Source: Styela clava (Eukaryota). From it: a DNA stretch of 64,000 bases. The notes below the pieces were generated by a model that had not been told where the DNA came from, did not search any database, and saw only the letters and a program-made list of their open reading frames with translations. Shown here piece after piece: positions 2,871 to 44,657 of this stretch. Position numbers and translations under genes: made by a program. The stretch is taken from contig NC_135253.1 in assembly GCF_964204865.1 (NCBI RefSeq), positions 15,686,001-15,750,000 on the forward strand. The letters are read 5' to 3'. Each line of letters opens with the position of its first letter. Within the stretch, counting starts at the first letter, position 1.

Positions 2871-5158
2871 ATGCATATCACTACCTGCGAAATGCACACA
2901 TGCGGCGAGCCGTTGAGAATCATTGAAACTGGATTTCCAAATATCTCGGGGGAAACAATCTTGGAAAAGATCGCTTACATACGAGAAAATTGCGATGATA
3001 TAAGGAAGTATGTATTTCTGAAATTGCAAAGTTTTTCATATAACTTTTTCTCACAAGGTTAAACTACTAGAGAAACATAAGAACATTACAATGAGGCTAG
3101 AATCCAATAGTCATGTATTCATTTCTCCCTTCCCTTCTATAGGATATCATCTTGTGGAGTATGCGCACCAAGATGTCGCATAGCCTGAACCCTAACTTGG
3201 TACACAATCTGAATTCAGGTTGTGTGTCATCTTGGTGCGCATACTCCAGGAGGTCCCATCTTGTTTTATACTAAATAAACATTTAGTACTGCCAGATTGT
3301 AGTTGGTATATTTGGCTTTGGTGGAATTTAAAGTTGTAGTTAAACCTAATGCAAAAAATGTCATATTTCTGGAATTTATTTAAGGTTTTTGATGCATGAG
3401 CCTCGTGGACATCATGATATGTTTGGAACATTAAGAGTTGAACCAGATTTACCAAATGCAGATGCAGCATTTATATTTATGCACAATGAAGGATATGGTA
3501 CAATGTGTGGACATGCCATCATCGCCTTGGGAAGGTAGAATGTTATGATTAACAGTTTTGTATATTTTTAAAGTACACACATATGCTTGTTTCATGTATA
3601 TTTTTGTTCATTTTCACACCTGATAATTTTGGTAGAAATAGTAGTTCAGCTTGCGTGTGTGACAAAATAAATTAGTATTTTTGGAATTGGCTTATGAGGT
3701 AGGTTTTTCATCTTTTCTGTGTTTGCTGAGATAATAACCAATGTTTTCAGATACTGCGTTGATTACAATATAGTTGAAGCAAAAGAGCCAGAAACCTTGG
3801 TCAATATTCAATGTCCATGCGGGCTTATTCCAACCTATGTTTCGTATGGTAATGGTTTATCTGGGAGAGTGAGGTTTCAAAGTGTGCCATCATTTGTTTT
3901 GAAAATGGGTAAGAAGAAAATGCTGGTGTGATTTTTTTTTGTTATTCAATATGTTACTGTATACAATGTTGGGTAGACCATAGAGTCTCAGCTCAAGTCT
4001 CTTAAACGCTCGTCTGTACATACCAAGGACGAGCACAATGCTATACAACACATTACATTGTACACATACCTAGATGTTAGAATATGTAATATATATAAAT
4101 GGAAATCTCAATATAAAGCAGTTTTTGTGCATACCTATTTGAACAACAACATTGTCATTTTCAGATGTCAATGTGAATGTACCAAACATTGGTATGATCA
4201 CTGTAGACATATCTTATGGAGGAGTATTCTATGCCTTTGTTTCTACTGACGCACTCGGTTTGACACTCAAGGCTGGTGATGCATTGAAGGCCGTGGAAAT
4301 TGGGCAAGCTGTATTGAATGCCACTAAAAAGATTGTAAGACATACCGGTAACTGTTTGAAGCATTTAAAAATTGCCAAACTTAGATATGAAGGGATTACC
4401 TCAAATCAAACTCATATTCACAAAAAAGCCTGTAAATCGGTATTTAGGAAGGACAAGTTTTACGGAACAGGGTAACAGTATAATTAATTACCAATACAAA
4501 AAAGTTTCCGCCATCGTCCTACATTATTTCACATCTTAGTTTTGTAAAACTGCTAATAATGCACAAACATCATAGGTTAAGGTTGAACACCCGGAAAATG
4601 AAGATCTTGGTTTCCTATATGGCACTATAATATATGACAGAACAGAATTAAAATCAAATGATTTGATTCGACAAATGATAGTGTTTGCGGATCGTGAGGT
4701 ATGTAAAATTACACCTTGAATATATATTACTATCAACAACTATTTTCTGGTCTCTTTTATTTAGCAGTTACATTGAAATTGGTGATTTATTTTTTTAAGT
4801 TGGATAGAAGCCCATGTGGTTCAGGAACAGCAGCTCATATTGCTCTGATACACGCAAAAGGTCTACTGGATGTTAATTGTCAAAAAACATTTCAGAGTAT
4901 CGTCAATGATTCAAAGTAAGTACTCTGATGTCTAAAAAGTTATGGAGTGTCCAATTGGTTCTCAATAACTCTTACAATCACTAGCTCATATACGTTTAAA
5001 TTTTTCCAAGGTTTACTGGAAAGGTTGTCAAAAAAGCCAAATGCGGAAACTTCAAAGCTGTCATAGCAGAAGTGTCTGGGAATGCCTATTACACAGGCAA
5101 AAATTTGTTTACATCAGAGGATAAAGACCCCTTAAAGGCTGGTTTCACCGTCCGATGA
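2871..5158 (+). CDS. L3HYPDH: Proline racemase family protein (trans-3-hydroxy-L-proline dehydratase/L3HYPDH lineage) with Cys/Cys active site; 7 exons, 333 aa, intact
   Basis: Exons 2871-3007, 3385-3534, 3751-3908, 4165-4334, 4576-4698, 4800-4915, 5011-5158; all introns GT-AG, phases consistent, total 1002 nt. Motifs MHTCGEPLRII, EPRGHHDMFG, HNEGYGTMCGH, CPCG, DISYGGVFY, HPENEDLGFLYGTI, DRSPCGSG, EVSGNAYYTG, EDKDPLKAGF are colinear with human L3HYPDH. Confidence 0.93.
3155..3248. repeat. Short palindromic (hairpin/MITE-like) element in racemase intron 1
   Basis: tggagtatgcgcaccaagatg...cctgaa pairs with ttcagg...catcttggtgcgcatactcca; a related palindrome lies at about 47240-47315. Confidence 0.75.
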
Positions 5159-5413
5159 TCAGTTGCAAAATTACCTTCAGCAAAAGTGAAAAAATGTATC
5201 CGTCAGACAAGGGTTCTGCACCTCACATATATATCTCTCACGAAGAAAATTGCTGCTTCTCATTACAGCTGCTAAAATTTACATTTCAATATACATGAAA
5301 ATATCTTGTGTATTCTATCATCGAAGTTACAATATAGAATTAAGACTAAAATAAGGTGACTGCTTAGTTGCTACTTTTTGTATCCTCGATTTGGCGTGGG
5401 GGCTGTTCACGCT

Positions 5414-5821
5414 TAGGGCTGGGCATTTCGAATCGAATATTCGAATCGAATAGTAAATTATTCGAATCGGTTCAGAGCTAAATTTCGAGTCGCCGCCATC
5501 TTGTTTTTATCTTTCCGCTAATGGTCGAGGTGAATTCATAATTTTTTTTTTCATTGGAGTCATATTTTTTCAACGAAATTCTAACATATGACTATTTTCT
5601 GTAGTGAGTTATTGATAAAACGTGTTTGTTATTCTGTGTGAACGCTCAGTAATCTATCTGAGTGATTTATTCTATGTCTTCAGTAATTCATTTGTTGAGA
5701 GAACCAATTACTATAATAAAGTCGCTCACAATTATATATTTTCAAGTATTCAAGATTCGATTAGAAAAAATTATTCGATTCGATTCTGAAATCACAAGGT
5801 ATTCTAAAATGCCCAGCTCTG
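5414..5821 (+). mobile_element. hAT-type MITE (family A; TIR tagggctgggcat, internal tcgaa repeats)
   Basis: TIRs tagggctgggcat / atgcccagctctg; degenerate 8-bp TSD ttcacgct/ttcacgag; same family as 13211-13611. Copies at 27547-27954 and 53502-53909. Confidence 0.8.
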
Positions 5822-7644
5822 TTCACGAGAGCAGAGCAGAGTTCTTTATCATACCTTGGAATGTTCTTTCGAAACATATAAAAAGTAAAAATCGCTTTTA
5901 TTCCGAGAAGTCATGAAATGGAATAAAATAATTTTAATGAAAATTTACACATATACTTATATATAAATTAAAAAGATGCTAGAAATAAAAGCGCATTAAA
6001 AAAAGCCAAGCCTTGTCTAGCCAATACCGGGTGTTAGATCAGACCCTCTGATTGAAGATAACTGGGAATTAAGTCGTCCGGACAATTTATTTGAATTTTT
6101 GCCTCGTGGAATGTCACAAATTGAAAGAAAAAATATTAAAAATTGACCCTGATGTTTTTGTAGACATTTTAACATTACAGGAAGTGAGCAAGAATCTTAC
6201 ACTTGGAGGTCAGAAAGAGTTGTTAGTGTAAGTAATGTATAAAGTAAATAACATACATGTTATTATGCTGAGAAATGCTTCTTCTGTACAGAAATATTGA
6301 TAATTTAAGAAGGATTAATTAATAGCGATATAGTGATCATCTTTGGTTTCAGAAGTCTGTTATGGGCTTTGAATTTATATGTCATATAAAAAATTAATAC
6401 TATCAACCTAAGTCGCATTTTAATAAAAAACACAATTACAAAAACCGACTTTGTCTATAATTTGTGGTACATTGCAAATAATGTATGCTCATTTGAATAT
6501 AGTCCATGAATGTTATCAATAAAGTGATTTTATATAGTCTCAGAGAGGCGACATTTTTAGAAATGGAACAGAGTATGGAGTGGTTTTTCTTCTCACGGGA
6601 TTTGAGGAATTTGAATATCAAACTGAACAGGTATGTTGCTTATATAACTATATATGTACCATCGATGGTACTTTTTGTATACGATTTTTGCTTAGAAATG
6701 CATGTTGTTAATAAAGCTATATAAAGTTGAAAGAATGTTTGCAAGCGTCTATTCCACATATTTATAACTTTTTTTCAACTGTTTCTTTAAACTCAGAATT
6801 GGATCGCCCGTGAACTGATGGAATATAGCACTGCCATTTTGTGTCCAAATATTTGTCATTCGATCGTGGAACTAAATAAAGTTATGGAAATTATGTCAAG
6901 GCCCAAACATATGGAAAAATACGTTGACGATTCGGATGCTGGTCTCATCAGGAATGCTCTGATTAAATATCGAACTCTAGAACAGGCAAATATCTCAATG
7001 TTCAAAATATATGACGAAACTCAGTCTTCGGAGTTATTTTCATGTGATGCGTTGATGTATTATATATTCAATGTTTAAATTGTTGATCATTTATTAATAG
7101 GGCCAATTCCAACAACGCAGTTATTGAAACGTTGCATCGTTCATAATATCTTTTAATTGATTACATTTTATTTTCAGGGCAATGTAGGAGACATGACTGC
7201 AAAACTGCGAATCACGAATCCCCACGAAAACGTGTTAAAAGATCAGAGAGAGGGCGGAGGTGAAACTTTTTGTTTAAAACAATGCAAATGAATTTTGAAA
7301 AAATTGTATAAACCTTTGACTGCTCATTGAAGTAAAGCATTGCAAAAAAACGGGAATTTTCCATTGGCTCAATTGTTTATAGAACCTAAAATTCTGTGAA
7401 GTCTAGTTATTTCCATATATGAAGAATGGTCAACATGTGCATGTTGACAATGTGAGTGATATAATAAGTTATTACATAGCAAATTGCATTCAAGAATTTA
7501 GTTCTTTAATCTGGTTTTCAGTAAAATACTTTCGCGAAGACGTTAAGAATATGCTGAAGAAATTGCAAGGCACGCAACAAAGGTATTTTTAGTATAACTA
7601 GATTTGAACATTACTCTTGTCTTGAATATTTTACCAGAATGTCT

Positions 7645-8026
7645 CTTTGGGGGTCCATGATGACTGCACAGGGGCTCCGCAACGAAATGCAAAGGCTCTG
7701 ATCGATCCCTAATGATTGATATCAATCAAAAGGCCGTTGCATCTTATTGGTTGAGTGTTGACTAATATCCATTGCTGTCAGAAAAGGCAATTACAATTTT
7801 ATTGACTTATGCAACGATCTACATGTGGGAATATTCATTTTCAGCTTTACCCATATGATGACAAAATACAGGTCAAGACTTGCCGTGGACTCGGACCTAC
7901 GAGTTTGCTTGTCACAATGTCGTTTGTGTTGTAAATGAAATATTATCCTTCCCCGTTGGTGTGGCACAGAAATTGATACGGCTTAGGATTGGGGTCCCCG
8001 CGGCCTAATAAGTTTGGGAAGCCCTG
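7645..8026 (+). mobile_element. Non-autonomous hAT (Buster/Charlie-like) remnant with decayed C-terminal dimerization domain
   Basis: Decayed YPLLSEKAITILLTYATIYM..FS...KYRSRL coding remnant; terminal gtttgggaagccctg; inverted relative of 16595-16966. Confidence 0.7.
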
Positions 8027-8399
8027 TATTTGACAATAACATTTAACAGATTATAATGCAGCAGCACTTAGTGAAATAACAAAAAGATTGTGTTTTATTC
8101 GAGGGGCCAATATATTCTCGTGGATCATATCAAACCAGTTATTGGAAAAAACGTTATGATTTTTTCGGATGAAAATCCAGATCTTACTGTTGTAAACACC
8201 GTCACAGAAATTTCTTCATTCGGAGCCTTCCTCACGTAAGTTTTTAATATTTAAAAAAAACTTTTAATGTTTCCATGATATGTTATGTTTACCTGTAAAA
8301 AAGCTCTAGCTATGGAAGCTGTGCGGCATACTTATACGAAATATATAAATTTTCCGATCATATTATGGTCATAAAGGGGACTTATTTCAGTATATAGAG

Positions 8400-9057
8400 C
8401 AGAGGTGGGCACAATTTTTTAGTATAGGAGCCGCATGCTGCAAGTCAGAACTTTAAAAGAGCCGCAAAATTGGGGAATTTATTATTATTATCAAAATTCC
8501 ATGAACAGATAAAAAATTAACACGAGAGTCTAATAACAATAAATAGATAAACAAGGCAACTATGCTCAAATATATGCACAATTTGAGCTCATTTAATTTG
8601 TGTTTCCTTATAGCTGATTTACAAGGGTAGTCTCGTAAGAAGTTTTCATGATTCGTTTCATGGTGCCGTTTAACATTGCTGACTTTATTCTGACTTAGTA
8701 GCTTATGGCAGATTAAGCACAATGGTTTATTCTCCTGACTGGTAAATGAGTATTCTTCTTTCCATTCTGACTTGACAACTCTGTTTTCCTCTTCGTACTT
8801 TCGTTTCTTAATTTAGGATATGCACAGTAACTTAGAGTTAGACTAACTAACTGCAATCAAGCTGCAATACCACCGACGCATCAATAAACATTGACCATCG
8901 TGACGAAAGATTTGCTGACTTGCCTGACTTAAATTCAACGCTACAGCGATTTTCATACTGAAACATAATTTGTCTTAATCATTCACAAAAACTTCTTTAC
9001 AATAAATTAAAAGAGTTTACATTAAAGCCGCCGCGAGCCGCGGTGTGCCCACCACTG
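8400..9057 (-). mobile_element. Buster/GTF2IRD2-type hAT deletion derivative carrying a transposase N-terminal zinc-finger remnant
   Basis: TIRs cagaggtgggcac / gtgcccaccactg; perfect 8-bp TSD atatagag; empty site in the paralogous intron near 11610; minus-strand KRKYEEENRVVKSEW..KPLCLICHKLLSQNKVSNVKRHHETNH. Copies at 30506-31163 and 56488-57146. Confidence 0.9.
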
Positions 9058-9352
9058 ATATAGAGCATAGATAGGTCGTGGAGCTCACTAATTTGTATTT
9101 GATTTTTTTCTTTTGCAGTAAAGGAAAAAATATCATAATAAACGAATGCTTTGGAAACATTTCCAGGACGAAGAACTATGGAATTGACGCAATCAGCACA
9201 TCTAAAGGCAATTTTGCCTTAGATCTCATATTGACGACATGAAATCCGCGTATCAGTTTATATTGGAAGTCAATAACTACCGATTGACGTTGGCAGCTGC
9301 ATAATACATTACTAATATTAATTATTATTAGAATATATAGGACACAATATTT

Positions 9353-10236
9353 CAGTGGTTCCCAACCTTTCTACCTCCACGGCAGATTTGTCCTTGCAGA
9401 CCGGCAAATAAATGAAACATAACATAATCACCTGTGTTTGAGTAACTGTAGTTGAGTAACAATATTTTGGCACATAATACAACAAAATATAATAGAACAC
9501 CAAAATCATCTCAAACAACAAACGACCAATTAAACGCATATAAACACTTTTATTTTAACGCAAAAAATCTTTCACGCATTAACGCAACACACGAAGTGAA
9601 TAATTCATTCTTTTCTTTGGAGCACTCATCGCTTTTTTAAATTTGTGAAGTTTCGCGTTATTCACCCATTAACTTGTTAGGTATTCTTATTTTACATTTA
9701 CATGGCATTTTCCACGTATTTTGGTGTGAAAAGAACCATCATGCGATACAGTTTATTGCGACCAAACACAAATCTGGGTCGAACATTTATCCTTAAATAA
9801 TTTGACAGTATTTTCCGATGTCAATTTTAAGCAATATTCATTGGAAGTATAAACTTTGTAGCGAGTAACATTCTGTCTATTTTATTATTGAAATACTATT
9901 ATACTCTGTGACATTGTTTACTTTTGTGTGGGACGATGTAAACTATTGCTTATTGTAAACTATATGTGAAAATTTAAGTATGTATTTTGCGAATTTGTGA
10001 AAATTAACAAAACGATTTCGCGACGGATTGAACCTTAAAATTGTGATTCCACGTTGGCCAATACAACACCGAGCAATCAATACCATGCTTGTCAAACATC
10101 CATTTTAACGGCGGACGACAAATCGCCAAATAAACCGATGTTACTCCATCTGTTTTGCATTCAATCGGTTACACTGACAGAAAAATAAAACAAACAACAA
10201 CATTTCTCAATTTAGCCGAACGGTCGGGAACCACCG
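9353..10236. mobile_element. Charlie/Buster-like hAT MITE
   Basis: TIRs cagtggttcccaacc / ggtcgggaaccaccg; degenerate TSD caatattt/ccatatat. Copies at 31459-32340 and 57442-58323. Confidence 0.7.
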
Positions 10237-11429
10237 CCATATATGAATATTACTTACTTTTCACATTATATTAATCGAGAATCAACAGTTTTTACCTAAG
10301 TCATTATATCAGAAAGTAAACTCGATAAAGTTGTTTGTGAAGATAAATTAGAATTTTGTTATATATATATCCTACTAAGGCTAGTTTCAGTGTCGATTTA
10401 TGCATTTGTAAATATTTACCATACAAAATGTATAACTAATAAATGTCTAATCAAGTCAGAATGATGTTTTTCCTTTTCTATATTAATTCTTGTATTTGCA
10501 AATCAACTAAACAAAAAAGCAATGCTCAAATACATATAGGCACAAAAGTCAAATCACTACGCCAAAAATACTATCTTAGAATGAAATTATCTTGTTTTCA
10601 ACGCCGTTCTCAGTAATGTCCTTGTTCCACAGAGACAAATATTACATTTGTTTCATATTTCTGAATGTCGCTACAGTCTTGTTGTAGGAAAAAGATATAA
10701 TTCCGCGTGACATTTATCTTAACCATGCAACATCAAATTTACTTAGTGAGACATTTATTACGTACCTAACCATTTTTTGTTCTTGCTAAAGAAATTGAAA
10801 TAAGTACAATCTGCCATATTTCAGTCAAGAAATACTGACTTCCACAACAAGTTAGGAAGCGTCTGAAATGATTCGATGTGACGATAGTATAAGGCGAAAT
10901 TGCTTACTGTCCTTCCTTTCTTTTTTGTTGTCATATTCCTGTTTCCCCAATATGCATGTAAATTCAATAACCTTTGACAAATAATGACGGAAAATGACAA
11001 AGTTTATTGTGAAATATATAGTTAATTTGAAAATAAAATAAAATTAGAATACTTTTGGCGACTTCTTACGTCTATGACCACTGAAAATGTAAAATTGATT
11101 GGTTCATTAGCTGTGGTGAAACCCGCAACCTTCTCGTCATTCAAAATGTCGCTCCAGCAGCAAAACTGTACACTTTTACAAAAACATACATATGAACTTT
11201 CGTGTCCAATAAATGCATGAAGAATAGGAAAAATCAAAATATGATTGTTTCTGATGGTACCAATAGCCAGATCAAGCATTTCGTATTTATGATACTCAAC
11301 CACGACAAAACGTGTAATAAAGAATGACAATGGCAATCGAAAATTGAATTTTTGTTTGTAAATCTTGTGGTTTTTGGGTTATATAATTATTATGCAGTCG
11401 CCAACGTCAATCGATAGGTCCTAAATCGA

Positions 11430-14400
11430 TCATGTAATTAATATGAGATCTAAAGCAAAATTGCCTTTAGATGTGCTGATTCCGTCAACTCCATATTGCT
11501 TCGTCCTAGAAATGTTTCCAAAGCATTCATCCATTATGATATTTCTTCCTTTTCTGCAAAAGAAAAAAATCGAATACAAATTAGTGATCTTCTTAGCTAC
11601 TCCATGCTTCATATACTGAAATAAGAAAACCTTTTTTATGACCATGACACAATCGAAAAATTTATTTGTTTTGAAGTATGCCGCATATTTCCATAGCTAG
11701 AGCTTTTTTACAGGATAACATAACATATCATGGGAACATTAAAAGTTTTTTCAAATATGAAAAACGATATAGGATGTTACCCACGCGAGGAAGGCTCCGA
11801 ATGATGAAATTTCTGTGACAGTGTTTACAACAGTAAGATCTGGATTTTCATCGGAAAAAATCATAACGTTTCTTCCAATAACTGGTTTGATATGATCCAC
11901 GAGAATATATTGGCCCCTCAAATAAAATACAATCCTCTTGTTATTCCACTAAGTGTTGCTGATACACATTATAATCTGTTAAATGTTATTGTCTAATTCT
12001 AATACATTTATTTCATGTGCGATCGATGTGTTCCGGCGCTATGAGGTCTAAGGGTTTATAGTGTTGATAGTTTTTTGCAGCATGAGAGACATTCTGTTAA
12101 AATAATCAAGAACCGAGTAATGTTTGAATCTAGTTATACTAAAAATACCTTTGTTGTGTGCCTTGTAGTTTTTCCAGCATTTCTTTAACGTCTTTGCAAA
12201 AGTATTTTACTGAAAACAAGATTAATTAACTAAATTCATGAATGCAATTTGCTTTGTAATAACCTATTATATCACGTACATTTTGTTAAAGTCGACAGAC
12301 ACTTGTTGACCCATTTGTTTTTTTGCAATACTTTATTTCAATAACCAGCCAAAGGTTTATACAATTTTTTTTTTAATTCACTTGCATTATTTCAAACAAA
12401 AATATTCCACCTCCGCCCTCTCTCTGATCTTTTAACACGTATTCGTGGGGATTCGTGATTCCCAGTTTTGCATTCATGTCACCTACATTACCCTGAAAAT
12501 ACAAAGCAATTGTAGAAGATATCATGAGCGATGCAACGTTTCAATAACTACGTTGTTGCAATTGCCCTTTTTTGAATGAGCAACAGTTCGAACATAGAAT
12601 TAATTGAATATCAATGCATCTACATCAATGCATCACAAAGATAACTCCCAAGTCTGCGTTTTGTCATATATTTTGAACATTGACATATTTACCTGTTCTA
12701 AAGTTCGATATTCGACCAGTGCATTCCTGATAAGACCAGCATCCAAATTGTCAACGTATTTCTCTATATGTTTGGGTCTTGACATAACTTCCATAACCTT
12801 ATTTAGTTCCACGATCGAATGACAAATATTTGGACACAAAATGGCAGTACTATATTCCATCAGTTCACGGGCGATCCAATCCTAAGTTAAAATAAAACAG
12901 TTGATTCGAATTTTAAAATTTGTGAAATAGAAGCATGCAAATATTCTTCCAGCTCTATATTGCTTTATTAAACGTCTTAAATAGCGACAACATTTAAACG
13001 AATCTTAAATATTTTAACATCATGTTCATCCGAAAATCTGAAGACGCTCGAAAAAATGAGAGTTTCATAAAACGATAAATAACATTTATGAGGACATTGC
13101 AAATTGAAATGATTTTTACGTAAGTACGGATCCTAACAGCATGCTCAAAACAAACGGGAGATCTGAAATATTTCTGAGGAAAAATCGTATACATTTATAC
13201 CATCGATGGTTATGGCTGGTCATTTTTGAATACCTGATGATTTCAGAATCGAATCAAATAACTTTTTCAAATCGAATCGAATCTCTAATACTTGGAACAT
13301 TTATAATTGTATGTAACTTTCCTATTGTATTGGGTCCTCCAGACACATAAATTACTGGAAACGAAAAATACATCACTCAGACAGATTGCTGAGCGTTCAC
13401 ACACCATGAAAAACACGTTTTCATCAATACCTCACTGCAGAAAAGAGTCTCATGTCAGGATTCCGTTGAAAAAATATGGCTTCAATAAAAAAAAATGAGA
13501 AATTTACCTCGACCATTGACGGCAAGGAAAAAAACAAGATGGCGGCGATTTGAAATTTCTCTCTGAACCGATTTGAATATTTTACTATTCGATTCGAAAT
13601 GCCCAGCCCTATCGATGGTATAAATGTATAGTTATAAAATCAACATACTTGTTCAGTTTGATATTTTTGTTCTTCAAATCCCATGAGAAGAAATACAACT
13701 CCATACTCTATTTCATTTCTAAAAACATCGCCTTTTTAGAATATATAAAATCACTTTATTGATAACAATTTAGAAACTATATGCAAATGGGCACATTTGC
13801 AATGTGCCACAAATTATACGCAAATCAGGTTTTTCTGATTGGGATATTAAGGAAATGTGACTAAGGTTAATAGTATGAATTTTTTATGTGACATATACAT
13901 GCGATACGAATAACAACCCCAGAAACTAAAGATCTCTATATTCCTTCTAATCCTTTATAAATCAATCAATCAATCAAATCGTTTTTATCAGCCATCTCGG
14001 CAAAGCTGAACATAAATGAAAACAATTGAGATCACAAAAATAAGCAGGATATCCGCGAAATGACTATTCGGTCTACCCGTCAGCGGCAACCTTAAAATAG
14101 CTTAAAACTTGAATACAAAATTTGCACAGCGCGAAAATTTTTTATGCGAGAACAGCATCGCCCAAGATGACGCTGAAAAGCAATAATAACCTTATTATTT
14201 ATAGAATCAGGGAATTCCCCCTATATTATTTCGGAGCAGTGCTGTTCCGGCACTTTTAGGTTAACGTTTCTGGAAAAAAGTTAGACAATACATATTAGGT
14301 TTAGTAATAGGACGATACCAAAGAAATGCCAGTACTGAAACTGGTAGCTAACGAGAAAAGATATCTTCATGACAGTAAAAATACCTCAATGAACATGTAA

Positions 14401-16441
14401 TGTGCATGCCAATGTACATGTAATTGTATTGTAACATGAAAAAAAGTACAGATCAACAATCATGTCTAGCAGACACTGAACACTGAAATAAAACTACTAT
14501 GATATTGGGGAATGCAATACACATTTATGAAGAATATAAGGATAGTAAATGGTTGAGTAACTGAGTTTTAAAATTTGGATTTGTTGAGTCTTTAAATAAC
14601 CAATATTTATGTACAGAAACTTTCTGTACTTTTCTATCAGAACAACAACATGTGTGTTGCAAATTACTTACACTAACAATTCTTTCTGAAAGCCAAGTGT
14701 AAGATTCTTGCTCACTTCCTGCAGTGTTAGAATGTCTACGAAAACATCCTGGTCAATTTCTAATATTTCTCCTTTCAATTTGTGACATTCCATGAGGCAA
14801 AAATATTCTTCGCTGACAACAATCAATATTCCGGTGTTTGACTTGTTGTATAATTTCCAAGTCTTGATAAACATTTCAGCCAAACCAATTGTCATATCCG
14901 TGCTATCAAAATCTTGCTCAAATGGAATTCTTGCTTTCAGTAAAGAGCGTTTGTAAACATGCTTGAGAAAACTTGCTACACCAAATCCCCATCCTGAAAC
15001 ACCCCATTCCAAAAGTTTAGGAAGTTGGATTCCTTCATCAGTTTTATTCACCATGTAATCTGCTCTCGTTATTGATAGCTCATACCGGTCCTGGAACATG
15101 ACTCATTTACCATATGTATTTTAAATAACAGATTATTCATAAAGAGTCGTTCAATTACACGATAAATCGGTAGGAAGTGTTAAAAACAACACATGTGAAT
15201 CTGTAGTTAATTTATTACATCGTGAAGACGTGAAGAGTGTTATAATTATATTCATTTTCAGGTCCAGCAGTTGGAAAAATACCATTGCAACGTATCAATT
15301 TCTACACATGCAGTCATGAATCAAGAACTTGCCATGATATATTTTCTGTCAAGTAGAACCCTACCCGCACCTGCAACCGACCTTCGACACTTACATCTCG
15401 GACAAGAATAAACAGTTTACTTACCTCACGATTGACTGATTTCGACACTCTTTCGTATACGCCGAACATTTTTTTAATGAGCCAGTCCGCTTTCGCAACA
15501 CTAAAAGTAAATATATAACTCCATATTCATTCCGCATACCTAAAGATCACAGACAAGCATGAAACGGTATGAGACTTACAAAACTGTCTAAAGACTGATA
15601 TTTTTTCCTGTACTAAGTTCCTATTTATGTGATCTCAGACTAGATATGAGTTTGTTGAATAAGTTGTTATATATTTATGATCACTACATTCGCAAACTGA
15701 GTAGGATTTACCTGTCCAATCCTTTCTTCACAAAATCGAAATCAAAACTGACATTATGATGAAGTTTGTGAAATTCTGGGCAAACTTGGTTTACTCTGCG
15801 CATAACATCAACGGGCATTCTCGAGGGAAACAAACAAAATGGAGCCATCTTGTCATGCTGCAAAACCAACCATTAGTAAATTTTATTCGACATAGATCAC
15901 CTATTTTTAACGCATGGTATCTGGATAAATTGCGAGTGCTTACTAAAAGAGAACAAAACTCTTAATGCGGCTTCAATCGTACGCCCATGTGTATAACTGA
16001 TAACATTTTACTATCAGCGCAACGAATTTTACTTGAATGTAATTATTCTGTGTGGACAAATTTCGGTTGACAAGGATACAGTGAATGAAAATAGTTAGTC
16101 TTATCATTTTTTGGAATTTACTTTCTAAAAATTAAATATTTTGACGGAAGAGATGTTTTTTTTATTTTTCATAAAGGTGTATAGTGATCAAACCTGGCAG
16201 AGCGAGGGACAATACAACCAATTTTCGAGAATTTTAATTTTTATAGAAAAACCTAAAACTAGTTTAATCTTCCACAATAATGATAGATACGTACTGGTTT
16301 TCTTGACTCGTCATACCACTGAAAGAAAAATTTTTGCTTCTTGGCCTCTTCGATCGCTGATGTTGAGCATTTTTTCAACCATTCTTTCGATTGAAATACA
16401 TTTTCAAATTGATGTTCAATAACAAAATTATCAGAAGACAT
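11430..16441 (-). CDS. GSS: Divergent glutathione synthetase-like ATP-grasp ligase (eukaryotic GSS fold); 10 exons, 481 aa, intact
   Basis: Exons (minus strand) 16441-16295, 15857-15712, 15500-15425, 15090-14672, 13718-13649, 12881-12693, 12492-12411, 12209-12149, 11916-11785, 11553-11430; total 1446 nt, phases consistent. Motifs APFCLFPS, RADYM, KLLE, WIARELME..A..CP, VLKDQREGG, YIL..IKP, TEISSFG, SRTK are colinear with human GSS. Confidence 0.9.
13211..13611 (-). mobile_element. hAT-type MITE (family A) in GSS-like intron 5
   Basis: TIRs tatggctggtcat / atgcccagcccta; perfect 8-bp TSD tcgatggt; empty site in the paralog near 6660. Copies at 35909-36534 and 61297-61922, both with an internal insertion. 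Confidence 0.88.
13961..14590 (-). mobile_element. Probable 5'-truncated LINE (CR1/L2-like) 3' end in GSS-like intron 4
   Basis: Minus strand ends in a (gatt)n tail, with an ORF2-like terminus FKTQLLNHLLSLYSS* at the other end; absent from the paralogous intron near 6300. Confidence 0.55.
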
Positions 16442-16594
16442 TTTCAATGTATTTAGTATATCTTTATGAACCGGGTAATATATTTTATTATATATGTATC
16501 TGAAATAAAATAAATATCCTTCTTTTCATGTGATATGCGAATCACTTCTAAACAAAAGACTATACAAAAATACCATCTATGGCAAGTGTATAGT

Positions 16595-16966
16595 CAATTT
16601 TTGTGCCTGACCAACGAGGAAAGATCGTGTTTCTTTTAGAACACGAAAACCGTTAATGTGATGAATGAACTTATCAATTTATCGATTTTCAGAGCAAACG
16701 TGATAAGCAAACACATTATCATCATATAGGTAAAAGCTGAAAATGCTGCCTCACACGTGTGGGTCGTTGCCAAAGGCAATAAAATCTTAATTGCCTTTTC
16801 TGACAGCAATGGATACTCATCCATAACGCTCAAACAAAAAGATGAAATGGCTTTTGGTTTGATTGAAATCAAATATTAAAGATCGATCAGATTATTTTCA
16901 TATTGATGAGGATCCCCCGTGCAGTCATCACGGACCACCAGGGGCACCGTAGTTTGGGAAACCTTG
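16595..16966 (-). mobile_element. Non-autonomous hAT (Buster/Charlie-like) remnant with dimerization-domain fragment
   Basis: ORF 16636-16872 EYPLLSEKAIKILLPLATTHTCEAAFSAFTYMM is typical of the hAT C-terminus; terminal caaggtttcccaaac. Copy at about 39522-39893. Confidence 0.75.
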
Positions 16967-16979
16967 CTTTAGAAATTAA

Positions 16980-17339
16980 TTATCAATATTTCTGTACAGA
17001 AAAAAAACTTCTCACTTACATCAAACCATATAGGGTGAGACATTACTTACACTAACAATTTATTCTTAACCTTCAAGTGCATGACATACTGTAGTGTTAA
17101 AATGTCCACAAAACGTCATGGTCAATTTCAAATCGTAACATTCTATAAGGCAAATTTATTAATCGCACACAACCATCAATATCCCATCGTTTGAACTCTT
17201 GCTCCCTTTTCAAAGTTTGGTAAATATTTCTGCCAGACCAGGCGTCATATCTGTGCCAGCAAAACCGTGCTCATGTTGAATTCTCGCTTCCAGTAAAAAG
17301 CTTTTGTAAATCTGCTTGAGAAAACTTGCTACACCAAAT
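16980..17339 (-). pseudogene. Decayed relic of GSS-like exon 4 and its donor site (third, older paralog)
   Basis: Aligns by eye with about 14600-14990 (gcttgagaaaacttgctacaccaaat; ttacttacactaacaatt) but has many indels. Copy at about 39907-40266. Confidence 0.75.
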
Positions 17340-18369
17340 GTTTGTTATCGTGAAATTGGGGGGAGACGTCTGGTGCTATGCCGCGATATCACGAGAAAAG
17401 CGCAAATTTGAATTGAAACACTTACATCGATATTTGGCTCGGACCAGTTGTAGGGCCCATTTGATGTTACTTTTACTTTTGTAAACGACTCTATTGGGTA
17501 TGAAAAGTTCATAAGCATCGTATTGCAAAGTCGTCGTCGTTGTTAGTCTTGATATTGAAACGACCTTTTGTTGAAGGGGATATTCGCGTTTCTCCACAAC
17601 CAAGTTTAGAATTTTCAGTGCTTAAGAAAGAAGTGGCAAAAGGCTATTTTATTTTCAAATCAACTCTGGGTATTACGGGACCCGATATTAAATCCCAAAT
17701 TTTGCTGTTTTATTTCAATTCATTGTGATATTTTTTTCTTCTGTCAAAAGTTACCGCCGCCGTTGCGAATGTCCGCCGTTTGGCTGAGGGAATTCGCTGC
17801 TATGGTTAACATTTTTATTGGAAACGAAGTGGACCTATCGATCGTTATGTTGTTAGTTCAGCTTGATAGAAATATAAATATATTGTTGCAGAAGCTACCA
17901 ATAGCAAAAGCTCAAGTGCCCAACGTGTTGTCACAGAAAAACCACCACAACCAGTGGCCACGTCTGCTCGGAGTTTTGCCTGGATTTAAACAGAACAGGT
18001 TCTGATAACTATTGTAACATTAGCGTGACAGCAACCCGACCTGATGTTTAATTGTGAGTACCAGCATTTGTTGGTAATTGTCATTACAACAATTGATGCT
18101 GTTTGACAGAAATTACTCGTAGGAACCATCGTACTCATGCAAGCCTTAATCAGGTTAAAAAATTGGCCGCTACTTCTATCATAGTAGTAATTACTACTGT
18201 TAATACTAGTAACATAAAAACATCCTGGTCAGGATTTCTGACATTCAATTCAATTCAATCAAAACATTCAATTGCAGGTACCATTCTTTGATAATACAAC
18301 AAAGTCAGCGTGCAAATGATCCGGCGTCTATTTCGCCGTCGCCTGGACCTCTCCAGAGCATGCGGTCTA

Positions 18370-18915
18370 ATTAGGCTTCCCGCTGCTTGTCAACAGGGAA
18401 CCTATTGTATTCCTGTGTTTTATTATTAATATTTATTTATTATTATTTATTATTTTTATTATTTTTTTTTCAAATTGGTCCTACAAACTTGAAATTCACC
18501 TCAAAAGTTCTCTTATGCAGACTCTGCTATAGCCAAAAACAGTTATTCAGTGCAATTGTGGGCATCTGAAAATACAACACACAAAAAACAGAGTACATTA
18601 AAATATAGAAAAAGAAACAAAATTCTCAGTTGTTCTCTGCACATATGTATTCCTCCTGTTGCAATGTGCATTGTCTCATTCAAAAAAATGTAACTTGTTA
18701 ATTTTATACCCATTGAAAAGCGTTTTTTCACCCTCATTGTGCAAACGCCTTGAAGCGTACATTCATCTAAACTTTCATTATCGCTGCCAGATCTCTCGGA
18801 CAAAGTTATAGCCATCTTCAAAACGAAATAAATATTTTTATTTTGAAGTTTGCATGTAAATGGATCCATGAAAAGAGAATTCGCAAAATGCTAAATATTA
18901 CATCGCCTGTATATT
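18370..18915. repeat. Possible interspersed repeat (Helentron/DINE-like start: short hairpin followed by tta microsatellite)
   Basis: aggcttccc...gggaacct stem followed by a (tta)n tract whose length differs between copies; the far end is uncertain. Confidence 0.3.
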
Positions 18916-19314
18916 TTCATGTGTATCTACAATGCTTAATCACCAAAAATTTTTGGCGAAACTATCAAAACTAATTAATACTGAACTAATCGTAAAATAT
19001 AAAACGGTAACATGCATAATGTATTTTTGTATTTTTTGAGAAAGCAATTATTAACAAGGTATGTGCATGTGTAATAAACAAGGTACATATATATACAAAA
19101 TTTCTAGACACGGTTCAGGTTCAGGTGATCTTTCCAGAGAAAAATCAAAATTTATGTATTTGTCGTTAGAGAACACAGATGATAGTCATTGTATAGTAAG
19201 TCAAATATCCAATTCTGAAAACAGTTGGAAGAATTGAATACGATGGATGAGCCACGGATTGCGGTTATAACTAAATTTAGTTGGATTTGTTGTAAATTAT
19301 TTTTTGTAACCTAT

Positions 19315-21193
19315 TTACCCAGCTTTTAACAACAATGGTTTGCTTTCATCAATGATGCTTCTTCGTTGACTCGGAGTGTCTGTTTCATGAACCATCTCTG
19401 CAGAGAGTCGTCTATAGTCTGGTTTAACAAGGGCAACAAGGCAGCGCTGCATAAAACATGCAATCAAAGGAACTATGATAGCCATGGTTGCCCCATGCAT
19501 GTCCATAATTTTTCTAATCACAGCACCAAAAATGAACGCTGCCACCTCGGAAGGAAAATAATATATTGACATAAGTATCGTATTGTCGAACGGGTAGATG
19601 ACTTCAGTGAGAAATTCCGTAAAAATGACGTTGGAGCATATGCGCAAGGCCGCAAGCGCGGGATAGAGAACGATTAACACTGGAAAATATTTACATAAAT
19701 GCCCAAAATATATTCCTCCAGTTACCAGCAACATTCCGACAACGACTGAAAAATAATAATTTTTGAGCTAGTCACAAAATACTGAATTAACGTTTTCTAC
19801 ATGAATTACAGTATTTGCAATAAAATTCCAAGTCTACAGGTAAGTTTGCGAAAAATACACACCTGTACATATGTAGGCCTATATATAATGTTTCAGAAAG
19901 TATGTATTTTTGTCTGGTTACAGGGTAATGCAAAGTTTGCATGTGCGGTATGCAAGAAAATAGCATATGATATGTATTAGAAGATGTATGGATCGTAGAT
20001 AAATAAATTGTGCAATATTAACTGTGAATAGAGTAATTCAAGTGATAAAAGAATAACATATATACTAACACCTAGATGACTTACTTGCCATAGCGAATTC
20101 TTTGAATTTCTTTAATCTGTCCAAATAGTATCCAACAGCAAGACCAGCAATTATCGATGCAAGAGTACCAGCTATTCTAATCCACCCAATTTCACGGTAT
20201 GTTACTTCGGGAAATGTCATTGAGATCAACGAAGGAGCAAGCACTTTTGCTAATATCAAGGCTGACAATCCAAGTGAGTTAGCACAAGCAAGAAGTAGAA
20301 ATTGACGATTTACCAACAAATTCAAAACTAATTTCAAGAAAGATGTGTCTACTTCATGGGAAGCCCTCTCGTTTTTATCCGCTTTTAACGAAGTAAGTAT
20401 GTTAGCCTGCGCTGCTCCCGGCGGTGTTGGTGGTTGATTTTTCAACATAAAAACGAAAAACAATGCTGATATCGTAAGAATGAGAGCAGAAGTTCCTTTT
20501 GTGCTCATGAAAATAAGCCTAATATCATGGGAATTGTTCTCTATTTGAGTAGCGTTTCTGTAAGGAAGACACATAGGGTAGACTAATGCTGCTGTCGCCT
20601 CTCCCAAACTCACAGCGGACCATGTTACGCCGATGGCGGTCGCCGTTTCCTGTGCAGGAAACCAGCTAGCAGCAAGCGTAACCGGTAATATAAAATTGAT
20701 TCCGTTGGATAATCCAGTAAATAGTACTGCAGATAGAATCATCGGATACAGTTTTCTGCAAAAAAATAAGAAGCATATGCGGTTAAAGTGTGTCATACGT
20801 ACACTGTACATTTAAATATTGTGAAAAACATCAACCGTGCGGCAGGTTATTTGGTACATGAAAAATAAAACTATACAAGAATTACATAACTTGCCTGTTT
20901 TTAAATGCAAAAGTTCCTACGCCGATTCCGATACCAGCCGACAGCGTCATTATTGTTGCTTGAAATCGTAACCCAATTTTATTTTTGAAAATTGGTATCA
21001 ACACCGTACATACTCCAGCCACCAAGAAGTTCAACAGCGTCAAAATATCTATTTGAAATGGGGTGACGTTGAAGTAATTCGCGACGACGTCATTTACAAA
21101 ACTGTACGAATAAATTTCACAGAGAATGATCGCCATGCAAATTGATAAAACTGCTAGAAACACCCAACGAATTGGATAAACTTTGTATTCCAT
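19315..21193 (-). CDS. MFS transporter, FLVCR/SLC49-like; 3 coding exons, 466 aa, intact
   Basis: Exons 21193-20895 (GC donor ag|gcaagt), 20755-20085, 19745-19315; total 1401 nt in frame. Motifs YKVYPIRW, IGLR, WFPAQETATA, PPTPPGAAQ, LDRLKKFK, EVIYP, DYRRL; multiple hydrophobic helices. Confidence 0.9.
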
Positions 21194-25003: not shown

Positions 25004-27290
25004 ATGCATATCACTACCTGCGAAATGCACACATGCGGCGAGCCGTTGATCATCATTAAACTGGATTTCCAAATATCTCGGGGGAAACAATCTTGGAAAA
25101 GATCGCTTACATACGAGAAAATTGCGATGATATAAGGAAGTATGTATTTCTGAAATTGCAAAGTTTTTCATATAACTTTTTCTCACAAGGTTAAACTACT
25201 AGAGAAACATAAGAACATTACAATGAGGCTAGAATCCAATAGTCATGTATTCATTTCTCCCTTCCCTTCTATAGGATATCATCTTGTGGAGTATGCGCAC
25301 CAAGATGTCGCATAGCCTGAACCCTAACTTGGTACACAATCTGAATTCAGGTTGTGTGTCATCTTGGTGCGCATACTCCAGGAGGTCCCATCTTGTTTTA
25401 TACTAAATAAACATTTAGTACTGCCAGATTGTAGTTGGTATATTTGGCTTTGGTGGAATTTAAAGTTGTAGTTAAACCTAATGCAAAAATTGTCATATTT
25501 CTGGAATTTATTTAAGGTTTTTGATGCATGAGCCTCGTGGACATCATGATATGTTTGGAACATTAAGAGTTGAACCAGATTTACCAAATGCTGATGCAGC
25601 ATTTATATTTATGCACAATGAAGGATATGGTACAATGTGTGGACATGCCATCATCGCCTTGGGAAGGTAGAATGTTATGATTAACAGTTTTGTATATTTT
25701 TAAAATACACACATATGCTTGTTTCATGTATATTTTTGTTCATTTTCACACCTGATAATTTTGGTAGAAATAGTAGTTCAGCTTGCGTGTGTGACAAAAT
25801 AAATTAGTATTTTTGGAATTGGCTTATGAGGTGGGTTTTTCATCTTTTCTGTGTTTGCTGAGATAATAACCAATGTTTTCAGATACTGCGTTGATTACAA
25901 TATAGTTGAAGCAAAAGAGCCAGAAACCTTGGTCAATATTCAATGTCCATGCGGGCTTATTCCAACCTATGTTTCGTATGGTAATGGTTTATCTGGGAGA
26001 GTGAGGTTTCAAAGTGTGCCATCATTTGTTTTGAAAATGGGTAAGAAGAAAATGCTGGTGTGATTTTTTTTTGTTATTCAATATGTTACTGTATACAATG
26101 TTGGGTAGACCATAGAGTCTCAGCTCAAGTCTCTTAAACGCTCGTCTGTACATACCAAGGACGAACACAATGCTATACAACACATTACATTGTACACATA
26201 CCTAGATGTTAGAATATGTAATATATATAAATGGAAATCTCAATATAAAGCAGTTTTTGTGCATACCTATTTGAACAACAACATTGCCATTTTCAGATGT
26301 CAATGTGAATGTACCAAACATTGGTATGATCACTGTAGACATATCTTATGGAGGAGTATTCTATGCCTTTGTTTCTACTGACGCACTCGGTTTGACACTC
26401 AAGGCTGGTGATGCATTGAAGGCCGTGGAAATTGGGCAAGCTGTATTGAATGCCACTAAAAAGGTTGTAAGACATACCGGTAACTGTTTGAAGCATTTAA
26501 AAATTGCCAAACTTAGATATGAAGGGATTACCTCAAATCAAACTCATATTCACAAAAAAGCCTGTAAATCGGTATTTAGGAAGGACAAGTTTTACGGAAC
26601 AGGGTAACAGTATAATTAATTACCAATACAAAAAAGTTTCCGCCATCTTCGTACATTATTTCACATCTTAGTTTTGTAAAACTGCTAATAATGCACAAAC
26701 ATCATAGGTTAAGGTTGAACACCCGGAAAATGAAGATCTTGGTTTCCTATATGGCACTATAATATATGACAGAACAGAATTAAAATCAAATGATTTGATT
26801 CGACAAATGATAGTGTTTGCGGATCGTGAGGTATGTAAAATTACACCTTGAATATATATTACTATCAACAACTATTTTCTGGTCTCTTTTATTTAGCAGT
26901 TACATTGAAATTGGTGATTTATTTTTTTAAGTTGGATAGAAGCCCATGTGGTTCAGGAACAGCAGCTCATATTGCTCTGATACACGCAAAAGGTCTACTG
27001 GATGTTAATTGTCAAAAAACATTTCAGAGTATCGTCAATGATTCAAAGTAAGTACTCTGATGTCTAAAAAGTTATGGAGTGTCCAATTGGTTCTCAATAA
27101 CTCTTACAATCACTAGCTCATATACGTTTAAATTTTTCCAAGGTTTACTGGAAAGGTTGTCAAAAAAGCCAAATGCGGAAACTTCAAAGCTGTCATAGCA
27201 GAAGTGTCTGGGAATGCCTATTACACAGGCAAAAATTTGTTTACATCAGAGGATAAAGACCCCTTAAAGGCTGGTTTCACCGTCCGATGA
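25004..27290 (+). pseudogene. L3HYPDH: Racemase/L3HYPDH-like copy 2, frameshifted in exon 1
   Basis: ttgagaatcattgaaact (copy 1) is ttgatcatcattaaact at about 25046-25062. The 1-nt loss gives a premature TAA near 25133; the remaining exons are intact. Confidence 0.82.
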
Positions 27291-28225: not shown

Positions 28226-31200
28226 GAATTTTTGCCTCATGGAATGTCACAAATTGAAAGAAAAAATATTAAAAATTAACCCTGATGTTTTTGTAGACAT
28301 TTTAACATTACAGGAAGTGAGCAAGAATCTTACACTTGGAGGTCAGAAAGAGTTGTTAGTGTAAGTAATGTTTAAAGTAAATAACATACATGTTATTATG
28401 CTGAGAAATGCTTCTTCTGTATAGAAATATTGATAATTTAAAAAGGATTAATTAATAGCGATATAGTGATCATCTTTGGTTTCAGAAGTCTGTTATGGGC
28501 TTTGAATTTATATGTCATATAAAAAATTAATACTATCAACCTAAGTCGCATTTTAATAAAAAACACAATTACAAAAACCGACTTTGTCTATAGTTTGTGG
28601 TACATTGCAAATACTGTATGCTCATTTGAATATAGTCCATGAATGTTATCAATAAAGTGATTTTATATAGTCTCAGAGAGGCGACATTTTTAGAAATGGA
28701 ACAGAGTATGGAGTGGTTTTTCTTCTCACGGGATTTGAAGAATTTGAATATCAAACTGAACAGGTATGTTGCCTATATAACTATATATGTACCATCGATG
28801 GTACTTTTTGTATACGATTTTTGCTTAGAAATGCATGTTGTTAATAAAGCTATATAAAGTTGAAAGAATGTTTGCAAGCGTCTATTCCACATATTTATAC
28901 CTTTTTTTCAACTGTTTCTTTAAACTCAGAATTGGATCGCCCGTGAACTGATGGAATATAGCACTGCCATTTTGTGTCCAAATATTTGTCATTCGATCGT
29001 GGAACTAAATAAAGTTTTGGAAATTATGTCAAGGCCCAAACATATGGAAAAATACTTTGACGATTCGGATGCTGGTCTCATCAGGAATGCTCTGATTAAA
29101 TATCGAACTCTAGAACAGGCAAATATCTCAATGTTCAAAATAAATGACGAAACTCAGTCTTCGGAGTTATTTTCAATGTTTAAATTGTTGATCATTTATT
29201 AATAGGGCCAATTCCAACAACGCAGTTATTGAAACGTTGCATCGTTCATAATATCTTTTAATTGATTGCATTTTATTTTCAGGGCAATGTAGGAGACATG
29301 ACTGCAAAACTGGGAATCACGAATCCCCTCGAAAACGTGTTAAAAGATCAGAGAGAGGGAGGAGGTGAAACTTTTTGTTTAAAACAATGCAAATGAATTT
29401 TGAAAAAATTGTATAAACCTTTGACTGCTCATTGAAGTAAAGCATTGCAAAAAAAACGGGAATTTTCCATTGGCTCAATTGTTTATAGAACCTAAAATTC
29501 TGTGAAGTCTAGTTATTTCCATATAAGAAGAATGGTCAACATGTGCATGTTGACAATGTGAGTGATATAATAAGTTATTACAAAGCAAATTGCATTCAAG
29601 AATTTAGTTCTTTAATCTTGTTTTCAGTAAAATACTTTCGCGAAGACGTTAAGAATATGCTGAAGAAATTGCAAGGCACGCAACAAAGGTATTTTTAGTA
29701 TAACTAGATTTGAACATTACTCTTGTCTTGAATATTTTACCAGAATGTCTCTTTGGGGGTCCATTATGACTGCACAGGGGCTCCGCAACGAAATGCAAAG
29801 GCTCTGATCGATCCCTAATGATTGATATCAATCAAAAGGCCGTTGCATCTTATTGGTTGAGTGTTGACTAATATCCATTGCTGTCAGAAAAGGCAATTAC
29901 AATTTTATTGACTTATGCAACGATCTACATGTGTGAAGATTCATTTTCAGCTTTACCCATATGATGACAAAATACAGGTCGAGACTTGCCGTGGACTCGG
30001 ACCTACGAGTTTGCTTGTCACAATGTCGTTTGTGTTGTAAATGAAATATTATCCTTCCCCGTTGGTTTGGCACAGAAATTGATACGGCTTAGGATTGGAG
30101 TCCCCGCGGCCTAATAAGTTTGGGAAGCCCTGTATTTGACAATAACATTTAACAGATTATAATGCAGCAGCACTTTGTGAAATAACAAAAAGATTGTGTT
30201 TTATTCGAGGGGCAAATATATTCTCGTGGATCATATCAAACCAGTTATTGGAAAAAACCTTATGATTTTTTCGGATGAAAATCCAGATCTTACTGTTGTA
30301 AACACCGTCACAGAAATTTCTTCATTCGGAGCCTTCCTCACGTAAGTTTTTAATATTTAAAAAAAACTTTCAATGTTTCCATGATATGTTATGTTTACCT
30401 GTAAAAAAGCTCTAGCTATGGAAGCTGTGCGGCATACTTATACGAAATATATAAATTTTCCGATCATATTATGGTCATAAAGGGGACTTATTTCAGTATA
30501 TAGAGCAGAGGTGGGCACAATTTTTTAGTATAGGAGCCGCATGCTGCAAGTCAGAACTTTAAAAGAGCCGCAGAATTGGGGAATTTATTATTATTATCAA
30601 AATTCCATGAACAGAAAAAAAATTAACACAAGTGTCTAATAACAATAAATAGATAAACAAGGCAACTATGCTCAAATATATGCACAATTTGAGCTCATTT
30701 AATTTTTGTTTCCTTATAGCTGATTTACAAGGGTAGTCTCGTAAGAAGTTTTCATGATTCGTTTCATGGTGCCGTTTAACATTGCTGACTTTATTCTGAC
30801 TTAGTAGCTTATGGCAGATTAAGCACAATGGTTTATTCTCCTGACTGGTAAATGAGTATTTTTCTTTCCATTCTGACTTGACAACTCTGTTTTCATCTTC
30901 GTACTTTCGTTTCTTAATTTAGGATATGCACAGTAACTTAGAGTTAGACTAACTAACTGCAATCAAGCTGCAATACCACCGACGCATCAATAAACATTGA
31001 CCATCGTGACGAAAGATTTGCTGACTTGCCTGACTTAAATTCAACGCTACAGCGATTTTCATACTGAAACATAATTTGTCTTAATCATTGACAAAAACTT
31101 CTTTACAATAAATTAAAAGAGTTTACATTAAAGCCGCCGCGAGCCGCGGTGTGCCCACCACTGATATAGAGCATAGATAGGTCGTGGAGCTCACTAATTT

Positions 31201-31348
31201 GTATTTGATATTTTTCTTTTGCAGTAAAGGAAGAAATATCATAATAAACGAATGCTTTGGAAACATTTCCAGGACGAAGAACTATGGAGTTGACGCAATC
31301 AGCACATCTAAAGGCAATTTTGCCTTAGATCTCATATTGACGACATGA
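28226..31348 (+). pseudogene. 5'-truncated inverted GSS-like paralog, copy 2
   Basis: Duplicate of 6093-9242. Confidence 0.82.
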
Positions 31349-44101: not shown

Positions 44102-44657
44102 CTCTTCTATCTGAGAACAATAGAAAATATATTCTATTTTCAAAGGACATTCAAAGTCGAAAACTACCGTTGCATCAGCAATGCATTGGCGTTACATCAG
44201 ATCTTATAATATTACAATAATCACAAAAATTTGTGTGAGGGTGGGGAGTGGGTAAAACAAAACGTTCAAAAATGATTTCGCAAAACAACGCAGTATACGA
44301 AGTCGAGAAACATACAGTTCTTTGAGAATAGCATTTCTTTTCAGATGCAAAATTATCTTGTGGTTGAAATTTTTAATTTTAGTCGTTTAACATGGCTCGT
44401 TTTTGGCAACTTTCGTTTGATAATTTTAAAATCTCTAATAGTACCTTTAAATTAGGGTTGCCATACCGTCCGGAAAATTCCGGACATGTCCGGAATTTAG
44501 GGTTAAATTTTGCGTCCGGAAGAATTTTGAAAAATGCTCAAATGTCCGGAATTTTATTGCATCTGCAATCGTACTGTGCACACTGCTAATACTACGAGGT
44601 TGTGTGGAATTATGATGTAACAGAGCGTTCCCTATCAATGATGTTCACCACTTAGAA

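Follow-up and report, generated by a model that had tools for sequence, protein, structure and literature searches.

Bacterial clusters that produce dipeptides with an ATP-grasp ligase and carry a major facilitator superfamily (MFS) exporter, such as the bacilysin cluster, combine an amino-acid-modifying enzyme, the ligase and the MFS transporter. Among eukaryotes, neofunctionalised glutathione synthetases (GSS) have so far been documented in plant-parasitic nematodes (PMC5919673). In those GS-like effectors of the cyst nematode Globodera pallida that belong to Clade 3 (PDB 5OEU, 5OEV and 5OET; Lilley et al. 2018, PMC5919673), the catalytic Arg is retained, two Ser have become small residues, all gamma-Glu contacts are changed and the ATP pocket is mostly kept; glutathione synthesis has been lost, and a new substrate was inferred. 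Here, we analysed a stretch of 64,000 nucleotides (the window) from the ascidian Styela clava (C4:15,686,001-15,750,000; N-free, G+C about 34%), in which a proline-racemase-family gene (RAC), paralogues of GSS (GSS-like genes) and an SLC49/FLVCR-like MFS gene form a tandemly repeated block. Of the new points, the one that can best be defended is the GSS-like family, which forms the counterpart in a chordate to the GS-like proteins of nematodes.

Searches in the window were run exon by exon, and full-length comparisons were made through the NCBI models P0001, P0003, P0005 and P0006 only. Self-comparison resolved the window into not quite three tandem repeats of a single unit (1-22098, 22099-48047 and 48048-64000+), which are 98-99% identical; the first of them, B1 (1-22098; RAC, truncated GSS-like(+), GSS-like(-), MFS), was delimited by self-blastn against 22099-44452 and 48048-64000. 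The gene order of the repeated block, which measures about 22-27 kb, is RAC(+), GSS-like(+), GSS-like(-), MFS(-). For array mapping, 80 kb upstream and 60 kb downstream were added to the window, and the resulting 204 kb were mapped for all families. The whole array comprises five units, namely two of type A upstream of the window and three of type B, which are those of the window. Each type A unit holds two complete convergent GSS-like genes (P2, equal to P0003, and P1, equal to P0001, on the plus strand; M2 and M1 on the minus strand) together with an MFS gene, and the type B units have a 5'-truncated GSS-like(+) copy. Along the chromosome the order is a haem peroxidase gene, RAC-A, a GSS-like relic, RAC-B, the two type A units, the three type B units, the RAC copies R4 and R5, and finally BCKDHA-like and Elongin-C-like genes, so that extra RAC genes flank the array at each end. 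A defective unit-type RAC, Rm1, sits between both type A units, and the nearest RAC upstream of the first type A unit is RAC-B. The first-pass annotation of this DNA had described three unrelated intron-containing genes within about 18 kb that are amplified together. Both statements were borne out, by PF05544 (RAC), PF03917 (GSS-like) and PF07690 (MFS) matches in unit 1 and by the repetition itself. RAC, GSS-like and MFS fit into 18.3 kb and recur in five units, and the locus is therefore a gene cluster in the sense of at least three linked, non-homologous genes of pathway type; the physical linkage and co-amplification of the trio are direct observations.

The fold of the GSS-like proteins is settled by the full-length alignment of P0003 to human GSS (PDB 2HGS; E = 3e-46 over 439 residues), and the large exon in the window aligns likewise. 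GSH_synth_ATP and GSH_synthase domains extend over the full length (PF03917 on the exons; PF03199 and PF03917 for P0001, P0005 and P0006). The substrate pocket was then scored in human GSS numbering, with residue roles taken from PMC2845819. The results showed that the four Mg-binding acids D127, E144, E368 and E425 are kept, as are R125, R450, K364, K452, M129, I401 and G369-G370. The gamma-Glu-Cys contacts are replaced (R267L, S151G, E214Y, N216C, Q220C, Y270F and S149G), and N146 is also changed, to Gly. At the glycine site R450 is retained and the A-loop reads (A/G)ISTS, compared with GGVAA in the human enzyme. Within the Mg/ATP core, next to the conserved acids, K364 and G369-G370, K305 is Asn (K306 is kept) and the G-loop carries G371V, N373K and Y375F. 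The earlier proposal that this ligase lacks the gamma-Glu-Cys/Gly binding residues thus agrees with the replacement of all gamma-Glu contacts, of S149 and of the A-loop, with the glycine-site R450 as the residue that is kept. Its companion claim, that the core catalytic residues are preserved, stands for the Mg-binding acids, R125, R450 and K364 and fails for the phosphate-binding K305.

A search for the canonical GSS elsewhere in the genome, which had been recommended, located the gene on C18, where the exons, read directly, encode a complete and intact glutathione pocket. The GSS-like genes share their exon boundaries with this gene, including a split inside the G-loop, which indicates that they arose by DNA-level duplication of an animal gene. 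Since the C18 gene keeps the canonical pocket, GSS-like is an extra enzyme and not the housekeeping one. Because all the gamma-Glu contacts are replaced (PMC2845819), glutathione is almost certainly not made by the GSS-like ligase, and the residues of the pocket suggest that it is very probably a ligase for something else.

The parallel with the nematode GS-like effectors is close. Both are expanded paralogues of a housekeeping eukaryotic GSS, both keep the equivalent of R125, the Cys-contacting Ser pair has become small in each case (Gly and Gly in S. clava), every gamma-Glu-contacting side chain is replaced and the ATP-grasp core is largely kept; nematode GS-like structures are also among the PDB matches of P0003. 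On the other side, the origin in S. clava is independent and chordate, K305 is replaced as well, and the genes lie in a block with RAC and MFS genes. The N-terminus (MSSDN...) also differs from that of the nematode effectors, in that on visual inspection it bears no resemblance to a signal peptide, and the S. clava protein is therefore probably intracellular rather than a secreted effector.

Six GSS-like copies are fully open over ten exons (Mu1-3, M1, P1 and P2), and M2 has a stop in exon 6. Mu1 (11430-16441, minus strand) has ten open exons and GT/AG at all nine introns, as established from the exon map against P0005/P0006, the splice flanks, the human GSS alignment and PF03917, and its intron boundaries reproduce the junctions of the NCBI models. 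Exon-wise comparison and splice flanks gave ten open exons for Mu2 as well (34129-39368, minus strand). By exon mapping, Mu3 (59517-64000, minus strand) has exons 10 to 3 in the window and exons 2 and 1 just past its end. The plus-strand copy of the first unit, Pt1 (6097-9239), is 5'-truncated and probably a pseudogene: tblastn with P0003 covers residues 220-481 only, the copy retains exons 5-10 preceded by the final 44 codons of exon 4, and there is a frame break at 6021-6228. Its counterparts Pt2 (28230-31345, plus strand) and Pt3 (54185-57328, plus strand), identified by mapping and exon-wise comparison, are likewise 5'-truncated. A remnant of the large exon with a broken reading frame is present at 17050-17344 (minus strand), where fragments in two frames resemble exon 4 (tblastn, 62% identity over residues 159-229). 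This remnant and the second GSS-like gene of each unit, which in the window is truncated and decaying, were missing from the gene list of the first-pass annotation.

Existing NCBI models for relatives of the ligase exons are named 'glutathione synthetase-like [Styela clava]'. P0005, a protein of an older annotation, matches the type A copies, and P0006, the model for the window-type GSS-like(-), maps to Mu3 and begins inside exon 4. In exon 4, the identity between P0006 and the closest copy in the genome (window 62984-63367) is only 97.7%, and transcript data from a different individual may have been used to build or correct this model. Genome-wide, GSS-like sequence was found in this array only. 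Full-length P0003 detected no GSS-like relatives outside S. clava in the collections searched, and an exon-sized query returned zero matches in a collection of 5.8 billion proteins; in both cases unannotated relatives are still possible. An exhaustive search with the large GSS-like exon yielded two matches, namely one S. clava cluster and P0002, a leucine-rich-repeat protein of 2845 aa that was rejected as spurious.

The RAC genes belong to the same superfamily as human L3HYPDH, within which Cys/Cys enzymes are proline racemases or 4-hydroxyproline epimerases and Cys/Thr enzymes are trans-3-hydroxyproline dehydratases (PMC3958920, PMC4113996). Human L3HYPDH is the best solved match of RAC exon 2 (E = 9e-17), which contains the same first catalytic Cys motif, GTMCGH. 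In exon 6, RAC reads DRSPCGSG where human L3HYPDH (7qpo) reads DRSPTGSG, giving Cys/Cys in place of the human Cys/Thr, so RAC is not a dehydratase-type enzyme. With PF05544 and Cys at both catalytic positions, RAC fits the Cys/Cys-type proline racemase superfamily, sharing the residue pair of proline racemases and 4-hydroxyproline epimerases (PMC4113996, PMC3958920). The second catalytic residue is Cys (TGT) in R1-R4, Rm1, the C6 gene introduced below, RAC-A and RAC-B, none of which has the human Cys/Thr pair, and Thr (ACT) occurs only in R5. If RAC is active, it is more plausibly a 3-hydroxyproline 2-epimerase than a proline racemase, because the Thr-to-Cys mutant of human L3HYPDH gains exactly this activity and becomes a 3-hydroxyproline epimerase (PMC3958920).

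Pro_racemase genes occur genome-wide only in this array and as one unlinked gene on C6. The C6 gene also has Cys/Cys, and the pair is therefore not specific to the cluster: the altered catalytic pair noted earlier is present in the motifs above, and it cannot count as a change particular to these units. A distance tree, midpoint-rooted and built with sequences from this genome only, had the topology ((C6, ((unit RACs), R5)), (A, B)). This topology, together with Cys/Cys in C6, RAC-A and RAC-B, makes Thr look derived within this genome. R5, the last RAC of the array, lies past the window end (C4:15,764,852-15,767,084; window coordinates 78852-81084) and is the only copy of the Cys/Thr dehydratase type. 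R5 and R1 share 86% identity, and in exon 1 and the 5' flank R5 matches the unit RACs at about 98%, a pattern that points to a recent switch in catalytic type or to gene conversion. RAC-A (C4:15,623,668-15,626,543) and RAC-B (C4:15,635,321-15,638,103) are open Cys/Cys genes, about 48% identical to unit RACs, with the unusual motifs TMCGE and GRGPCGSGT. The degraded GSS-like relic between them occupies C4:15,632,685-15,633,164.

Four of the six unit-type RAC copies are broken (R2, R3, R4 and Rm1), and among the three copies of the window only R1 is clean. R1 (2871-5158, plus strand), of the L3HYPDH lineage, has seven exons with PF05544 on every exon and Cys/Cys; its exon 1 donor is GTATGT and its exon 2 acceptor AAG/G. 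R2 (25004-27290, plus strand) is frameshifted by a 1-bp deletion in exon 1, as seen in the nucleotide comparison of that exon across copies, with 30 of 49 codons aligning. The coding exons of R3 (50957-53245, plus strand) are open, and nucleotide alignment of exon 2 showed that its acceptor has changed from AAG/G to AG/GG, which would shift the frame. R4 is a pseudogene with a 16-bp deletion in exon 2, and Rm1 has lost exon 7 homology and reads MCEH beside the catalytic Cys. Further candidate frameshifts in RAC exons 4 and 6 were dropped, their positions corresponding to intron read-through of query fragments.

The MFS gene of the first unit, F1 (19315-21193, minus strand; PF07690), has three exons, with junctions conserved in all five copies. 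Its intron 1 (window 20891-20757) is of the GC-AG type, with the donor AG/GCAAGT and an AG acceptor, the same in all five copies. F2 (42232-44101, minus strand), defined by mapping, exon-wise comparison and junctions, is open, and its exon 1 has an in-frame gap of 9 nt. Among solved structures, the closest relatives of exons 1 and 2 are the SLC49 choline/ethanolamine transporters FLVCR2 and FLVCR1 (PDB 8QCX, 8VZN and 8UBW), with which the protein shares the MFS_1 fold. In FLVCR2, choline is held by W102, Y325, F324 and Q191 (PMC11168923). The S. clava protein differs at each of these positions (W102I, Q191N, F324L and Y325I), and the cation-pi site for choline is therefore absent. The loss of the choline Trp, already proposed, is thus supported, by an exon 1 alignment around W102 that is weak (E = 0.009). 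A further difference from FLVCR1 and FLVCR2 is that the gene belongs to an expanded family with at least 40 further loci in the S. clava genome, many of them in arrays of their own and the nearest about 40% identical. Members of this family lie, for example, at C4:9.70-9.74 Mb, C4:17.80-17.82 Mb, C2:12.43-12.54 Mb and C13:15.33-15.35 Mb, and the expanded FLVCR-like loci have one large central exon, like the cluster MFS.

Selection was assessed exon by exon through guide proteins, and only the counts of nonsynonymous (N) and synonymous (S) changes were summed. Old GSS-like paralogue pairs gave a synonymous divergence (dS) of 0.25-0.40 and a dN/dS ratio (omega) of 0.22-0.31, with dS about 0.32 between GSS-like(-) of type A and type B. 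The MFS gene is open in all five copies, and its older pairs gave omega of about 0.2. For RAC, R1 against R5 gave dS 0.30 and omega 0.28, and R1 against C6 gave dS 0.79 and omega 0.15. All three families are under purifying selection. The Pt copies, compared among themselves, show 2 S:10 N, 0 S:8 N and 2 S:4 N, and this excess of N over S changes, together with the truncation, indicates that they are decaying. The array behaves like a birth-and-death cassette, in which almost all units retain GSS-like(-) and MFS, and RAC and GSS-like(+) are often lost.

We favour, with a probability of roughly 0.55, the explanation that the locus is a young, S. clava-specific tandem array of paralogues of three small-molecule genes, whose linkage is mainly a by-product of block duplication. 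The genes are, as had been suggested, duplicated primary-metabolism genes of animal origin, GSS-like having the exon boundaries of the C18 gene, RAC being closest to human L3HYPDH and MFS to FLVCR2/FLVCR1. Repeated segmental duplication of the 22-27 kb block by unequal crossing-over would have built the array, accompanied by dosage selection on the GSS-like and MFS genes. RAC would act as a two-base (Cys/Cys) 2-epimerase or racemase on proline or hydroxyproline, most likely trans-3-hydroxy-L-proline. GSS-like would be an ATP-grasp ligase that binds Mg-ATP, activates a carboxylate held by R125 and makes some other amide, with gamma-Glu-Cys recognition gone and glycine recognition probably gone too, and MFS would carry a solute other than choline or ethanolamine. 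Several observations weigh against this explanation. RAC/GSS-like adjacency recurs with a very divergent RAC lineage (RAC-A beside the GSS-like relic, RAC-B beside P2), which hints that the pairing predates the recent amplification and might be under selection. The changes K305N, N146G, G371V, N373K and Y375F could impair ATP use, and P0006 starts late. Moreover, divergence among the units of the window is only 1-2%, so some of the copy number, which comes from one assembly, could be an assembly effect.

It is possible, though in our judgement unlikely, that the array is a true animal metabolic cluster, in which RAC makes a D-imino acid (cis-3-hydroxy-D-proline or D-proline), GSS-like ligates it non-ribosomally to give a small peptide or amide, and MFS moves the product or precursor through a membrane. 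Such a pathway would account for three non-homologous, lineage-specific paralogues with remodelled pockets being linked in 18 kb, amplified as a block and all kept under purifying selection, for GSS-like genes occurring only beside RAC and MFS genes, and for the RAC to GSS-like order being repeated in the RAC-A/RAC-B lineage. The gamma-Glu half-pocket, now hydrophobic or small (Y, C, C, L, F), also fits a different, less polar acceptor, but it shows no feature specific to proline. Most of the unit-type RAC copies are broken while ligase and transporter remain intact, Cys/Cys recurs in the C6 gene, and MFS relatives form many arrays with neither RAC nor GSS-like neighbours. The way in which RAC is lost, the broad expansion of the MFS family and the lack of specificity of Cys/Cys thus argue against an obligate three-gene module. 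The fully specified version, a tunicate cluster in which an L3HYPDH-derived 2-epimerase supplies D-(hydroxy)proline for ligation by the GSS paralogue and SLC49-type transport, with the cassette amplified for dosage, appears slightly less probable again. The likeness to bacilysin-type clusters lies in the general three-function layout; the ATP-grasp subfamily differs, and the S. clava genes are animal genes with introns.

It is improbable that the array is largely non-functional, with GSS-like proteins that are pseudoenzymes or decaying and the repeats being neutral debris of segmental duplication. The changes at K305, N146 and the G-loop, the many broken members (Pt1-3, M2, the relics, R2, R3, R4 and Rm1) and the short N-terminus of the NCBI model for the window copy would be expected under this scenario. 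However, all four Mg-binding acids as well as R125, R450, K364 and K452 are retained (PMC2845819), and ADP-Mg binding persists in nematode GS-like proteins that carry similar changes (PMC5919673). The omega values of 0.22-0.31 at dS up to 0.4 and the six fully open copies with conserved splice sites also argue for function. Equally doubtful is a copy number inflated by alternative haplotypes placed in tandem, for although the 1-2% between B1, B2 and B3 is within the allelic divergence expected of a highly polymorphic ascidian, the units have private differences (a 3-kb insertion in unit 2, the 1-bp deletion in R2 and the acceptor change in R3), type A and type B are strongly different (GSS-like(-) dS about 0.32), and P0005 of the older annotation matches type A copies.

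The S. clava GSS-like family would be an independent chordate case of the half-pocket remodelling seen in nematodes, suggesting that this route to new ATP-grasp ligase chemistry can be taken repeatedly. If the epimerase and transporter do work with the ligase, the locus would be among very few animal metabolic gene clusters and would point the way to a small ascidian amide or peptide that is not yet known. Even if the three are not coupled, the array is a clear example of birth and death in a multigene cassette.

A gap in the unit-to-unit alignment revealed the insertion of about 3 kb in unit 2 only (44452-47377), which accounts for the greater length of that unit and is probably a transposon; its open reading frames (ORFs) at 45409-46096 have no Pfam match, nor do the intergenic ORFs at 11025-11378, 17610-18002 and 18546-18890. 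Transposon-like ORFs lie in GSS-like introns and in this insertion (window 8453-8722, minus strand; 16639-16875, minus strand; 45409-46096, plus strand), and one of the three has a weak zf-C2H2_12 match below the cut-off, the others being without Pfam match. Going upstream from RAC-A, the first gene outside the array is met after about 13 kb; this intronless ORF of 922 aa (C4:15,607,953-15,610,718, minus strand) specifies a haem peroxidase of animal type that includes a Mucin2 WxxW region (PF03098, E = 2e-164).

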